A DNA stretch of 64,000 nucleotides from Calcarisporiella thermophila CBS 279.70 (lineage: Eukaryota > Fungi > Calcarisporiellomycota): positions 1-64,000 of the forward strand of contig NW_027192215.1 of NCBI RefSeq assembly GCF_041956535.1. The letters run 5' to 3'. A program made the position numbers and the translations under genes. Under the pieces are notes generated by a model. It was not told the DNA's origin and searched no databases. It saw only the letters and a program-made list of their open reading frames with translations. This document shows positions 8,666 to 40,049 of the stretch, piece by piece; position 1 is the stretch's first letter, and each line of letters starts with the position of its first letter.

Positions 8666-9463
8666 ATGTCTTTCGAACATGATACAGCAGATTATGAGGA
8701 ATTTGTAACTTTTGATCTAAGTGATATTCGACCATTTAATGGAGTGACTCAGTATGATGCGCGTGAATGGCTTGAGGAACTCGAATTCGCGGCATTCCTA
8801 CAAAACTGGTCGGACAGGTTGAAGATACGCGCACTCGCACGAAATTTAAGAAATGATGCCATAGTATGGTTTCGTAACCTTCCAGCTGAGAAGAGATCCA
8901 GTTGGCTGGAATTAAGAGAAGCGTTTGATATGAAATACTCCCACAACCAGCCTATACGCTCATATCTCCTCGAGCTAACCAGCTTAAAACAACATGACGG
9001 AGAGCATGTTGCAGTTGTATGCACTGAACTCGAGAATCTCCTGCGTCGACGTGATATTATATTAACAGAGCACGACAAGGTTAACCTTCTGAGATCAGCT
9101 ATTCGAGAATCGCTTACTAGGTATATTAACTGGGATAGATGTAATAATCTCGATAATGCAATAAAGGAAGCACACCGAGCGGAGAATCTGCACCGTACCT
9201 ATGAAAAAAAGTCCTTAGGTCCGGTGACCAGGTGCGCTACCACTTTGGATGAGAATTCCAAACCATGGTCGAGTAGAGGCTATTCGAATCGAGATGGTGG
9301 CTCAGATGACCATCGCAAGGGTGCGAAGGACAATAAAAGCGGGAAGTCACGAAAGAAACCAAAAGATGCTAAAGATGCAAAGGGATCGAAAAGATGCTAT
9401 GTATGTGGGGATCCAAATCACGTAGCCCTTAACTGTCCAAGGAAATTTGTAACGACCTCCTAA
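8666..9463 (+). CDS. gag: Ty3/Gypsy-type Gag protein (capsid plus CCHC zinc knuckle), intact ORF
   Basis: PFNG...AREWL, L.NDA..WF..LP....SSW.EL..AF, MHR-like LKQHDGEHV, and the knuckle CYVCGDPNHVALNC. Start context aaaATGtct; TATA-like sequence at about 8613. Confidence 0.9.
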   Translation: MSFEHDTADYEEFVTFDLSDIRPFNGVTQYDAREWLEELEFAAFLQNWSDRLKIRALARNLRNDAIVWFRNLPAEKRSSWLELREAFDMKYSHNQPIRSYLLELTSLKQHDGEHVAVVCTELENLLRRRDIILTEHDKVNLLRSAIRESLTRYINWDRCNNLDNAIKEAHRAENLHRTYEKKSLGPVTRCATTLDENSKPWSSRGYSNRDGGSDDHRKGAKDNKSGKSRKKPKDAKDAKGSKRCYVCGDPNHVALNCPRKFVTTS

Positions 9464-32429: not shown

Positions 32430-33962
32430 CTACTCGCGAGCTGGGGCGCAACCGTCACCGCTGTGAGTGTGCTCTTTGTCAGCAGCACGGGCAACAAAAT
32501 CGCGCTTCACCTTGGGATTTCTGACGCTGGAAACATCCTTTTGGTAGTAGGCAATTCCGTGTGCAATAGCCTTGGCATTAGTAATGAATGCTTTCTTGTT
32601 AAGATTCTTGATGTTGTCGCAAGCAGCATGGTAGCACTTGTCATAAGCTTCGCCAGCCTTGCCGCCAAATAGTTTCTCCTCTTCCTTGGACTTCTTGCCC
32701 TCAGCTCCTGTATCAACACCACCAGAGGGAATACCGGCAGCAGCGAAGGGTCCTACATCAGAACGGCTGTAGGGGAATTTGTCGGCAACATAGGCGATCT
32801 TGTTCTTCTTGAAATAGTCCACAAACAATTGAGTCACTTTTTCGGAGCCAGGAGGAAGAGGGGTATTGTCACTATCGCCATTGTACACGTTGATTCTGTA
32901 GTTGGGTGAAGCAATCATATCGAAGTTCAACATCACTGCAATCTTCTTGATTTCTTCCTTGCTTAGTTGTTTGACATAGTGCTCAGAGCCCAAGAGTCCG
33001 AATTCTTCAGCGGAGAACCAGATAAAGCGCACCTTGTTTTTGGGTTTAGCATTGCGCATTTGGTAAGCAACCTCAAGGAGGGCAATAGAACCAGAACCGT
33101 TGTCGTTAAGTCCAGGGCCATCCACAACGGAGTCAGAGTGTGCTCCAACAACTACCACGTTATTCGGGTCACCATGTTTAGTCTCGGCAATGACGTTGTA
33201 GGTCTTGCGGTCCTCGTTGATCTGGACAAGGTTCAAGTTCAATTTCACCTTCTTGGATTTGCTCAACTCGATCAATTGCTTGCCGCTCTCCTGAGTGATA
33301 CCTCCAGTGGGGATCTTGCTAATATTCTCATTACCCAATGTTCCACGAACAGGCTCATTAGGAACATTGTTGAATACTACAACCCCAATAGCTCCATGCT
33401 TGCCGGCAATCAACGACTTGTTGTTGAAAGAACATCCACCACGCTCAATCAAGGCAATCTTACCCTTGACATTCACATCCTTGTAGTCACCATCCTCACA
33501 GCCAGTGGTGCCCTTTTCTCCGGCAACATCAGGAACTACAGCAAATTCAGCAGTGACTCCCTTCTTAGGGGTGCTAGCCGAGTTGGTCATGGCAAATATT
33601 GGGATATCAATGTTCTTTTTTTTATCTCCGAGCACAGTCAGCTTTTGCGAGACGGTGTGCGAGAATCGCGCAGTGAAGGGCTGGAGCTTAACCTTGTAGC
33701 CAGCTTTCTTGGTGATCTCCTGGATGTACTTGATGGTAAGCTTGTGGCCTTCGGTACTGAAGGCACGAGTATTTTGGTGTTTCTTGGCGAAGCCATTCAG
33801 TTTCTCAGCATGCTTCAACAAGTTGTTGAGCTTGATTTTGTCAACGAGCCATTTGGTATTGCCTTGATTATGGTGGAAAGAAGCAACTTCTTTGTGGTTA
33901 TGTTTAGGCTCTGCAGCCACAAGAGTAACAAGGAGGGTAGCAACAAGGAAGGAAACCTTCAT
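32430..33962 (-). CDS. Secreted M28 aminopeptidase with PA domain (aminopeptidase Y-like)
   Basis: Signal peptide; PA domain KGKIALIERGGCSF. Metal ligands and catalytic motifs GAHSDSV, NDNGSG, AEEFGLLGS, NFDMIASPN and CYH.ACD. Confidence 0.95.
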   Translation of the reverse strand: MKVSFLVATLLVTLVAAEPKHNHKEVASFHHNQGNTKWLVDKIKLNNLLKHAEKLNGFAKKHQNTRAFSTEGHKLTIKYIQEITKKAGYKVKLQPFTARFSHTVSQKLTVLGDKKKNIDIPIFAMTNSASTPKKGVTAEFAVVPDVAGEKGTTGCEDGDYKDVNVKGKIALIERGGCSFNNKSLIAGKHGAIGVVVFNNVPNEPVRGTLGNENISKIPTGGITQESGKQLIELSKSKKVKLNLNLVQINEDRKTYNVIAETKHGDPNNVVVVGAHSDSVVDGPGLNDNGSGSIALLEVAYQMRNAKPKNKVRFIWFSAEEFGLLGSEHYVKQLSKEEIKKIAVMLNFDMIASPNYRINVYNGDSDNTPLPPGSEKVTQLFVDYFKKNKIAYVADKFPYSRSDVGPFAAAGIPSGGVDTGAEGKKSKEEEKLFGGKAGEAYDKCYHAACDNIKNLNKKAFITNAKAIAHGIAYYQKDVSSVRNPKVKRDFVARAADKEHTHSGDGCAPARE

Positions 33963-37251: not shown

Positions 37252-38157
37252 TCATTTCTTTCCGTATTTCTTCAGCAAAAAGTCGCTAAGCTTATCCCAT
37301 TTCCATTTGCTCTGCCCCGGATTGAGAACTTCATTATCATTCTCTGAATGATCAAGTGACCCATTTCCCATACAAATGCACAGGTTTTTCTCGAACGAGA
37401 AGTCGGCATTAGTGGCTCGCTCTTGATCTTTTACGGAGACGTATTTTCGTTCAATCTTATCGGAAATAGCCTTTTCAAATAAACTGCACGCTTCGTTGAG
37501 TGTAATATTATCACCAGTGATTACTAGCTCTCGATTTGCAAACTTTGTATGCTGCACAGATTCAGCAACGCAACGGCCTACATCCCGATATGACGTGAAA
37601 CTAACCTTTTGTTCACCATCCCCAACAATGGTCCATTGGCGCGAATCGGTATCAAATCCGAACCATGGACCAAAGCTTTCTTCCATGAAGAGGCCAATGA
37701 AAAAGGCAGTATATTCAATTTTACTCGCTTTTACATCCTCCAAGTGTGCATTCTTGTCATCCCATTCGGTATGTACTGGAATATTGTAACGCAATTTGCC
37801 TGGGCTATGATTCATTCCGAACTCACTTGGGAGATAGCGCTTTACACCAGTTGCTTTTGCTGCTTTCAAGATTTCAGATAATATTTTAGGTGCATCGACA
37901 CTTTTGAAGCCAAGCGTGTTGATCAATACATCGGTATTGGCCAGCGCATTTTGCAATGCATTCTGGTCATTATAATTTTTGATCTCGACAATAGTTGCGC
38001 CAAGCTTCTTCAGCGCCTTAGCTGCCTCAGACTGAGATGACCGTGTTAAAACGCGAACCTCTGAAAATGCTCCTGTGTCGAGAAGTCCTCGAACGATGGC
38101 AGAGCCTAAGCCACCAGTTCCACCAACAACAGTAATATTGCGATAATTGGTTGCCAT
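37252..38157 (-). CDS. Isoflavone-reductase/NmrA-like atypical SDR, copy A (301 aa)
   Basis: GGTGGLGSAIV, AAKATGVKRYLPSEFG, IVGDG.QKVSFTS.RDVG. Confidence 0.92.
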   Translation of the reverse strand: MATNYRNITVVGGTGGLGSAIVRGLLDTGAFSEVRVLTRSSQSEAAKALKKLGATIVEIKNYNDQNALQNALANTDVLINTLGFKSVDAPKILSEILKAAKATGVKRYLPSEFGMNHSPGKLRYNIPVHTEWDDKNAHLEDVKASKIEYTAFFIGLFMEESFGPWFGFDTDSRQWTIVGDGEQKVSFTSYRDVGRCVAESVQHTKFANRELVITGDNITLNEACSLFEKAISDKIERKYVSVKDQERATNADFSFEKNLCICMGNGSLDHSENDNEVLNPGQSKWKWDKLSDFLLKKYGKK

Positions 38158-39320
38158 TGCTAATATAAAGTAAACAGGAGAGAAAGATTCAAAAATCAAT
38201 TGTCCAAGCTTGCTTCAACTTTTTTTTGTCTCTGAGAATGCTCTTAAATACCATCATATATTAATAATGCAAGAATTAATAATGCATTACATTTGAAACA
38301 TCTAAATTTGCGAGGGTTATGGATTGTTAAGGGTATTGTAGAGTTCCAGATATAATATTCCGCAGAGATCACAACGTCTCTAATAAAATGCACCCATTAT
38401 TTTGATAGCAAAGTGTCATTAAGTCATTTCTGCAAAACTGAAAGATATAACCATCGTTATAACTACCGGTTTATAAAATAATTCAATATATAAATATATA
38501 ATTTTAAATTCAACTTCCTGCGAACTACTGATTTTTATCAATAACCTGGTCTTCTTGGCTTCTATTCTAGAAATAAGATGATTGCTTTTTTTCAAAAATA
38601 TCAACACTCCCACGCTCCTTATCTATTGCCTAGAGTGTAAAAACTCTTCGGAGCCAAGAAAAGACCCATGTTGTAGCTCCTATTACGTGGCAATTTGAAA
38701 TCTAATTGAGCCATTTTACTAATCCGGTTCAAACTGTAGATCTGGATTACCCCGCTTCAACCGTTTCTAAAACCGAATACTATTTTCTTTACGTTTAAGA
38801 GGTTCCAAGCAAGGTATATAGGATAGGTTTTCCGTCGCCAAACTCGACCATTTGAGCTTGCCCATGCTACATTTTAAAAAATTAAAAAGAAATATCATTA
38901 AAGAATTTCAGGATAGAATACTGTGGTAATCTTTTGTCAATTACTAGAGTGAATATTTTGAATTCTTTGATTTCGATACTGTAACGTTAACAATGTTCTC
39001 ATATTATGCTTATTAATAACATAAGTCGGCCTTAAATAAATTATATAAAATTTACTATATTGGGTACATGATGTAATCTTCGGATTGCCTATATAAATGA
39101 ACAATAGATATCTTGACATAATCGTAACTTACTCATTTTTATAATGGCAACCAATTATCGCAATATTACTGTTGTTGGTGGAACTGGTGGCTTAGGCTCT
39201 GCCATCGTTCGAGGACTTCTCGACACAGGAGCATTTTCAGAGGTTCGCGTTTTAACACGGTCATCTCAGTCTGAGGCAGCTAAGGCGCTGAAGAAGCTTG
39301 GCGCAACTATTGTCGAGATC
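37981..39320. repeat. Perfect 178-bp inverted repeat (37981-38158 and 39143-39320) with a 984-bp spacer
   Basis: By eye, the reverse complement of 37981-38158 equals 39143-39320 base for base. A second identical 54-bp inverted tract lies at 37615-37668 and 39633-39686. Confidence 0.92.
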
Positions 39321-40049
39321 GAGAACTACTTTAAGCAAGAAGATTTGAAGAGCGCATTGGCGTATTCCGATGTGGTGATCAATACTTTTGGATACAACAG
39401 AGAAGATACACTCAAGGTTGCAAATGAAATTTTGAGAGCTGCAAAGGCAGCTGGAGTGAAGCGCTATATACCAAATGAATTTGGTACTGACCCCCGCCCT
39501 GGGAAATTGCGCTACCAAAATTCGGCGCATCATGAATTGCACGACAAAGAAAAGCATCTCAATTTAGTTAAGGAGAGTGGAATTGAGTATACTACATTCT
39601 ATGTTGGCTTCTTCATGGAGGGGACCTTCGGCCCATGGTTCGGATTTGATACCGATTCGCGCCAATGGACCATTGTTGGGGATGGTAAGCAAAAAGTGAG
39701 TTTCACCTCGCACCGTGACATAGGTCGTTGCGTTGCGGAATCTGTAAAGCATATAAAGTTTGCAAACCGAGAGCTTTCTATCGGAGGCGACACTATTACA
39801 CTTGACGAGGCATGCAGCTATTTTGAGAATGCTATCGCCGATAAAATCGAGCGAAAATACGTCTCCGTGAAAGAGCAGGAGCAAAGTATCGATGAGAGCT
39901 TTTCATTTGAGAAAATGCTATGTTTATTCGCCGGAGACGGGTCGCTCGATCACTGGAAGAATGATAATGAAGAGCTCAATTCGGGAGAGAGCAAATGGAA
40001 ATGGGACAGGCTAATTGATTTTGTTACAAAGTTATATGGACAGGCATAG
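39144..40049 (+). CDS. Isoflavone-reductase/NmrA-like atypical SDR, copy B (301 aa)
   Basis: GGTGGLGSAIV, AAKAAGVKRYIPNEFG. Head-to-head paralog of copy A. Confidence 0.92.
   Translation: MATNYRNITVVGGTGGLGSAIVRGLLDTGAFSEVRVLTRSSQSEAAKALKKLGATIVEIENYFKQEDLKSALAYSDVVINTFGYNREDTLKVANEILRAAKAAGVKRYIPNEFGTDPRPGKLRYQNSAHHELHDKEKHLNLVKESGIEYTTFYVGFFMEGTFGPWFGFDTDSRQWTIVGDGKQKVSFTSHRDIGRCVAESVKHIKFANRELSIGGDTITLDEACSYFENAIADKIERKYVSVKEQEQSIDESFSFEKMLCLFAGDGSLDHWKNDNEELNSGESKWKWDRLIDFVTKLYGQA

Follow-up and report, generated by a model that had tools for sequence, protein, structure and literature searches.

Two genes for putative reductases lie head to head in a 64,000-nt stretch of the genome of Calcarisporiella thermophila (Calcarisporiellomycota), and the 5' ends of their coding sequences (CDSs) face each other as a perfect inverted repeat. 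We here call the whole stretch the window; all coordinates refer to it unless they are preceded by the name of a contig. The locus belongs to contig C25 of an assembly that comprises 28.2 Mb in 116 contigs. An initial annotation of the window had proposed that the repeat works as an invertible promoter switch and had mentioned non-crossover gene conversion as a simpler alternative. As will be seen, the simpler alternative appears to be the better one.

The two CDSs have 906 nt each and can be aligned without any gap. They are 100% identical over CDS positions 1-177 and in the base preceding the ATG, i.e., from position -1 to codon 59, which makes up the perfect 178-bp inverted repeat. A repeat finder, pairwise alignment and a script agreed on this point and thus confirmed the arms as initially annotated; the 984-bp length of the spacer follows from the arm coordinates and was likewise correct. 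Behind this first tract the identity breaks off as abruptly as had been claimed. Mismatches begin at CDS positions 178, 180 and 183, and from codon 60 onward the proteins diverge, with VEIKNYNDQNALQNA in one copy vs VEIENYFKQEDLKSA in the other (peptide stretches KNYNDQNALQNA vs ENYFKQEDLKSA). A second patch of perfect identity, here called tract 2, is found in the middle of both genes. The features are compiled in Table 1.

Table 1. Features of the head-to-head reductase locus (window coordinates)
Feature	Position	Strand	Remarks
Left reductase gene	37252-38157	-	301 codons + stop, intron-less; Pfam NmrA, E 2.7e-35
Right reductase gene	39144-40049	+	301 codons + stop, intron-less; Pfam NmrA, E 1.7e-36
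Left arm, 178-bp inverted repeat (tract 1)	37981-38158	-	position -1 to codon 59; 100% identical to right arm
Right arm, 178-bp inverted repeat (tract 1)	39143-39320	+	position -1 to codon 59; 100% identical to left arm
Left copy, second perfect patch (tract 2)	37615-37668	-	CDS 490-543; peptide PWFGFDTDSRQWTIVGDG; degenerate codons identical 16/16
Right copy, second perfect patch (tract 2)	39633-39686	+	CDS 490-543; 54 nt
Spacer between arms	38159-39142		984 bp, unique, AT-rich (31% GC), both 5' leaders
TATATAAA box	39090-39097	+	47-54 nt upstream of right ATG; read from sequence, putative function
TATTTAAG (TATA-like) box	38242-38249	-	-92 to -85 of left ATG; read from sequence, putative function

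Judged by their sequences, both proteins belong to the NmrA-like or PIP-type atypical short-chain reductases. They score 122.9 and 126.8 bits against PF05368 (NmrA-like), for which Pfam demands 27, and share 73% of their amino acids overall. The closest relatives of known structure are plant enzymes: phenylcoumaran benzylic ether reductase (PCBER), pinoresinol-lariciresinol reductase (PLR) and isoflavone reductase. For the left protein the best of them is PCBER (1qyc; E 2.7e-21), for the right one pinoresinol reductase and PCBER. The dinucleotide-binding motif GxxGxxG is present as GGTGGLG at residues 12-18, hence within the 59 residues encoded by tract 1. Further downstream, VKRYLPSEFG of the left protein aligns with VKRFFPSEFG and its Lys135 with a lysine of 1qyc; the right copy reads VKRYIPNEFG and has the same HDK lysine. 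This lysine of plant PCBER and PLR we take to be the catalytic residue. Since GGTGGLG, the PSEFG motif and Lys135 align with PCBER, both proteins are probably active NADPH reductases.

Outside the tracts the two genes have drifted far apart. Background nucleotide identity is 71% and amino-acid identity outside the repeat 66%; beyond tract 1 the codon positions 1, 2 and 3 agree by 78%, 82% and 52%, respectively. Synonymous divergence (dS) outside the tracts amounts to 1.2-1.9 (1.7 according to NG86; 1.2 by maximum likelihood), while the nonsynonymous divergence (dN) is about 0.22-0.23. With such dS values the duplication must be old. The tracts look entirely different. Where both genes use a degenerate codon for the same amino acid, the codons are identical in 58/58 cases in tract 1 and in 16/16 cases in tract 2, yet only in 69/138 cases elsewhere (tract 1 vs outside, P about 3e-18). 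In 20,000 shuffles of alignment columns or codons the longest identical run reached 56-68 nt, as compared to the 177 nt observed for tract 1. If tract 1 is removed from the gene, 20,000 shuffles yield a longest run of 49 nt, to be compared with the 54 nt of tract 2.

The borders of the tracts are as sharp as their interior is uniform. Immediately next to tract 2, the silent sites of the codons agree in 24/47 cases vs 85/177 in the far background, and the first 60 nt past tract 1 are only 62% identical. A decay gradient beside the tracts was looked for and is not there. The tracts are discrete, sharp-edged patches, because silent-site identity is back to the background level right next to them. 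Nor does the encoded peptide account for the second patch: in the PCBER alignment it is conserved at GDG only, so that its identity at the nucleotide level calls for more than purifying selection. Taken together, the pair displays the pattern expected of ectopic gene conversion, which is over-long runs of identity together with silent sites that are identical inside the runs and diverged outside.

The arm is present exactly twice in the whole assembly. For this reason, a donor other than the partner copy is not available. In 264 contiguous kb, i.e., the window plus C25:64001-264000 (the latter including 3,585 positions read as N), no perfect inverted repeat of at least 30 nt occurs besides the two tracts. 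Within the window they are even the only repeats that are detected with a 14-nt seed.

Relatives of the pair are distant. The next paralogue in the genome is 43% identical (C9:825602-826348); its six-frame match is interrupted by four in-frame stops, which may point to a pseudogene or to introns. Another distant NAD-binding paralogue match, at C25:86410-86853, adjoins the only perfect direct repeat of at least 30 nt in the 264 kb, which is 47 nt long and lies at C25:87067-87113 and 87245-87291 with a start-to-start distance of 178 nt. A word-indexed protein search with E <= 1e-20 returned the two window proteins alone. An exhaustive search of protein sets of 5.8 billion and 1.8 billion sequences and of metagenome contigs revealed no relative above 43% identity; its best match was a 969-bp metagenome contig without gene context. 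A relative was also not found in a metagenome locus scan, and an exact search for both proteins among other assemblies did not retrieve any contig.

The spacer presumably holds the promoters of both genes. The idea that it might contain a hidden element was abandoned: it has no convincing open reading frame (ORF; none exceeds 64 amino acids), no tRNA and no match in Rfam, and it is single-copy in the 28.2-Mb assembly. The two 5' leaders had been called unrelated, and rightly so. Their similarity does not exceed that of shuffled controls (local score 13 vs a shuffle mean of 13.5), which equally disposes of any residual promoter homology between them. As to promoter boxes, a clear TATATAAA had been described for the right side only, at about 39090. 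It is true that the left leader can only offer a box of the TATTTAAG type; the right leader, however, has a second copy of TATATAAA at 39042-39049 that had not been listed.

How did two old genes come to share two identical patches? Most likely, they are inverted paralogs in which two short stretches were made identical by ectopic gene conversion or template switching, and the inverted repeat is a by-product thereof. The signature is one of copying, because silent sites are identical in the patches, the divergence outside is saturated and the genome contains two copies only. Since two separate patches occur in the same pair, the copying looks patchy rather than aimed at a single purpose-built arm. 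None of the measurements calls for an inversion, and the second, nested patch and the single orientation found in the assembly are among the points that favour the simpler alternative of the initial annotation, non-crossover gene conversion. One copy would have been transferred non-reciprocally onto the other at CDS 1-177 and at the 54-nt mid-gene patch, be it by ectopic conversion via the general homologous-recombination machinery or by a template switch during replication, the inverted repeats being close to each other. The genome possesses genes for Rad51 and Rad52 as well as a second RecA-like gene. A Rad52-family gene (C25:200679-201226; two exon matches, PF04098) is found at a distance of about 160 kb from the locus, still on contig C25. 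A family search with Ribosomal_S2 listed at least one RPS0 locus in this genome.

The shape of the patches can be rationalised, if only in part. Tract 1 ends on its inner side at the ATG because no homology remains upstream, the leaders being unrelated. The outer edges may reinforce themselves, as a divergence of about 30% would block the extension of heteroduplex. In addition, selection may oppose homogenisation beyond codon 59, in a part of the protein that could face the substrate, to judge by the solved relatives. It is plausible that recombination starts in the divergent promoter, which would be poor in nucleosomes, and from there does not proceed into the genes by more than about 180 nt; such an initiation would fit the 5' polarity of tract 1.

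The patches could be islands that were maintained since the duplication, or they could result from recent short-patch events. Long-running conversion is disfavoured because a decay gradient is missing and because the GC content at third codon positions (GC3) is not elevated in the tracts (31/77 vs 197/448, P = 0.62); with GC3 unchanged, there is no sign of GC-biased conversion over long times. Fresh homologous recombination is disfavoured because the flanks are about 30% diverged. Mismatch-repair anti-recombination normally strongly suppresses recombination between sequences of such divergence; the creation of the patches requires either maintained islands or a microhomology-based template switch. 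The suppression by mismatch repair and the inconspicuous GC3 both speak against copying as the origin of the patches. The comparison covers two copies from a single isolate, and the orientation of the spacer is the one found in the assembly. Finally, a tandem pair of carboxylesterase paralogs in the window (PF00135; 18506-20080 and 21154-22779, both on the minus strand), which share 67% of their amino acids and use the same codon in 40%, has no identity patch at all, its longest run being 23 nt. Because these similarly diverged genes lack any patch, conversion is not general in the region, and the idea that it is a region-wide feature had to be dropped.

The promoter switch deserves to be discussed on its merits. 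Its geometry had been described correctly: with these arms and unrelated leaders, a crossover within the arms would turn the spacer round and thereby exchange the leaders, while both proteins stayed the same. If this happened at a meaningful rate, the TATA-box promoter and the weaker one would be swapped between reductases of different specificity; the outcome would be a phase variation of a eukaryote that dispenses with a recombinase, and clonal populations with two promoter-to-enzyme wirings. The arms are perfect, the spacer is unique, and with the only perfect inverted repeats of at least 30 nt in the 264 kb one is hardly looking at background noise. Yeast inverted repeats do yield inversions via Rad52/Rad59 (PMC8748988), and Rad52 is available here. 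Among yeasts, moreover, switching of the flip/flop type has arisen on at least 10 occasions (PMC6692504). We nevertheless consider both the switch and the two-wiring populations very improbable. The assembly contains one copy of the spacer in one orientation and no alternative junction; with exactly two copies of the arm and a single spacer, there is no contig that shows the other orientation. Flip/flop repeats, at about 2 kb, are roughly 10-fold longer than the arms, and their systems silence much larger segments instead of swapping promoters (PMC6692504). A recombinase or nuclease gene is absent nearby; for the recombinase this had already been stated in the initial annotation and now holds within about 5 kb of the locus (ORF list, Pfam and neighbour searches). 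The second, nested patch would be superfluous for a switch, and a crossover there would even create chimeric proteins. What stands of the proposal is its geometry; a dedicated switch is unsupported, though not refuted. At most, inversion of the spacer would be a rare by-product of the copying, and occasional flips driven by recombination could occur.

Of course, the identity could also be made by the computer. The arms might be similar but non-identical in reality, due to the collapse of a bubble or to polishing with multi-mapped reads, or the orientation might have been chosen arbitrarily. A repeat of 178 bp exceeds the usual k-mers. The project in which an assembly of CBS 279.70 is described lists 454, Illumina/SOAPdenovo or PacBio/MaSuRCA data with polishing by Pilon as its methods (PMC11393059), which is compatible with such errors. 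Yet both ORFs are intact and stay in frame across the borders of the tracts, identity drops abruptly from 100% to about 65% at two separate patches, and the contig runs through the locus uninterrupted, without any N in its vicinity. An assembler is not able to invent identity between sequences that are 30% apart; at most it could erase a few single-nucleotide polymorphisms within near-identical arms. An artefact of this kind is very unlikely. Still further down the scale of probability ranks an RNA hairpin: a read-through or antisense transcript over both arms, which on one strand are perfectly complementary, would fold into 178 bp of perfect double-stranded RNA, which could co-silence both paralogs by RNA interference. 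An Argonaute gene with its Piwi domain is indeed present in the genome. The genes, however, are transcribed divergently, which means that each normal mRNA contains only one arm, always in the same sense orientation, and the second patch is left unexplained. We can hardly believe in this possibility.

Copying between inverted neighbours has precedents. The arms of human Y palindromes are inverted copies on the same chromosome which, as supposed for the reductases, are homogenised non-reciprocally around a unique spacer, with inversion as the rarer outcome; in palindrome P6, 56 conversions were counted vs 3 inversions (PMC3723533). Unlike in the Y palindromes, just 178 nt plus 54 nt are identical here, sharply bounded within genes of saturated divergence, and the host belongs to the early-diverging fungi. 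In Saccharomyces cerevisiae, closely spaced inverted repeats recombine spontaneously; conversions depend on Rad51, inversions on Rad52/Rad59 and possibly on replication template switching (PMC8748988). C. thermophila resembles these reporter assays in the proximity of the repeats and in having the Rad51 and Rad52 families. The assays, however, were performed with engineered ade2 repeats in a model yeast.

The flip/flop mating-type switching systems of methylotrophic and other budding yeasts, such as Ogataea polymorpha, Komagataella phaffii and Ascoidea rubescens, invert by general recombination without a site-specific recombinase, and their repeats consist in part of gene ends, as those of the reductases do; the repeat of A. 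rubescens includes the 5' end of MATa1 (PMC6692504). That inverted repeats flank a segment applies to the reductase locus too, with perfect 178-bp arms around its unique spacer. In the yeasts, however, repeats of about 2 kb enclose segments of 44 kb (A. rubescens) or 138 kb (K. phaffii), both orientations have been observed, and silencing next to a telomere or centromere determines the output (PMC6692504). The segment of C. thermophila has 984 bp, a silencing site is not evident, and the assembly shows one orientation. Between the locus and the contig end there are 37-40 kb, and a telomere repeat is not seen where the contig starts.

Bacterial invertons work with short repeats that serve as cleavage sites for a dedicated recombinase of the serine or tyrosine type, which is usually encoded nearby. 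The similarity to the reductase locus is obvious: a short segment with promoters is flanked by inverted repeats and, depending on how it is oriented, would drive one gene or the other. The difference is equally clear, in that the host is a eukaryote and no dedicated site-specific recombinase is found among the neighbours.

If the patches were indeed copied, the locus is a clean case of very short and sharply bounded copying between saturated paralogs, in a repeat-poor genome of the little-studied phylum Calcarisporiellomycota, and a useful marker of ectopic recombination or template switching in this phylum. It also calls for some caution, since expression can be assigned to the individual paralogs only by means of gene regions that do not belong to the two identical tracts. 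If both orientations exist, the locus would gain far greater weight, as metabolic genes would then swap promoters by inversion without a recombinase. To our knowledge, this has not been described in fungi.

The neighbourhood is of mixed character. Next to the reductases there are an orphan ORF that looks secreted, an M28 peptidase, an OHCU decarboxylase and a Na+/H+ exchanger. The peptidase (M28 with a PA domain; 32430-33962, minus strand) has its best non-fungal relatives in Streptomyces with 45-48% identity, and about 60% is shared with Basidiobolus; the distribution of this family looks patchy. Its best named matches are in Basidiobolus and in C. thermophila, and the C. thermophila protein VTP21DRAFT_8877 agrees by 100% over all 478 residues with contig C41 of the assembly, which identifies the genome as that of C. 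thermophila. From 1 to 40100 the window is populated by intron-less genes of the accessory type, such as an RPE65-like fragment (1494-2288), a retrotransposon gag (8666-9463), the esterases, the peptidase and orphans. From 40300 to 64000 follow intron-split housekeeping genes, among them the Na+/H+ exchanger, a WD40 protein, MRP-L28 and Tsr1. At the border of the accessory part lies the reductase pair.

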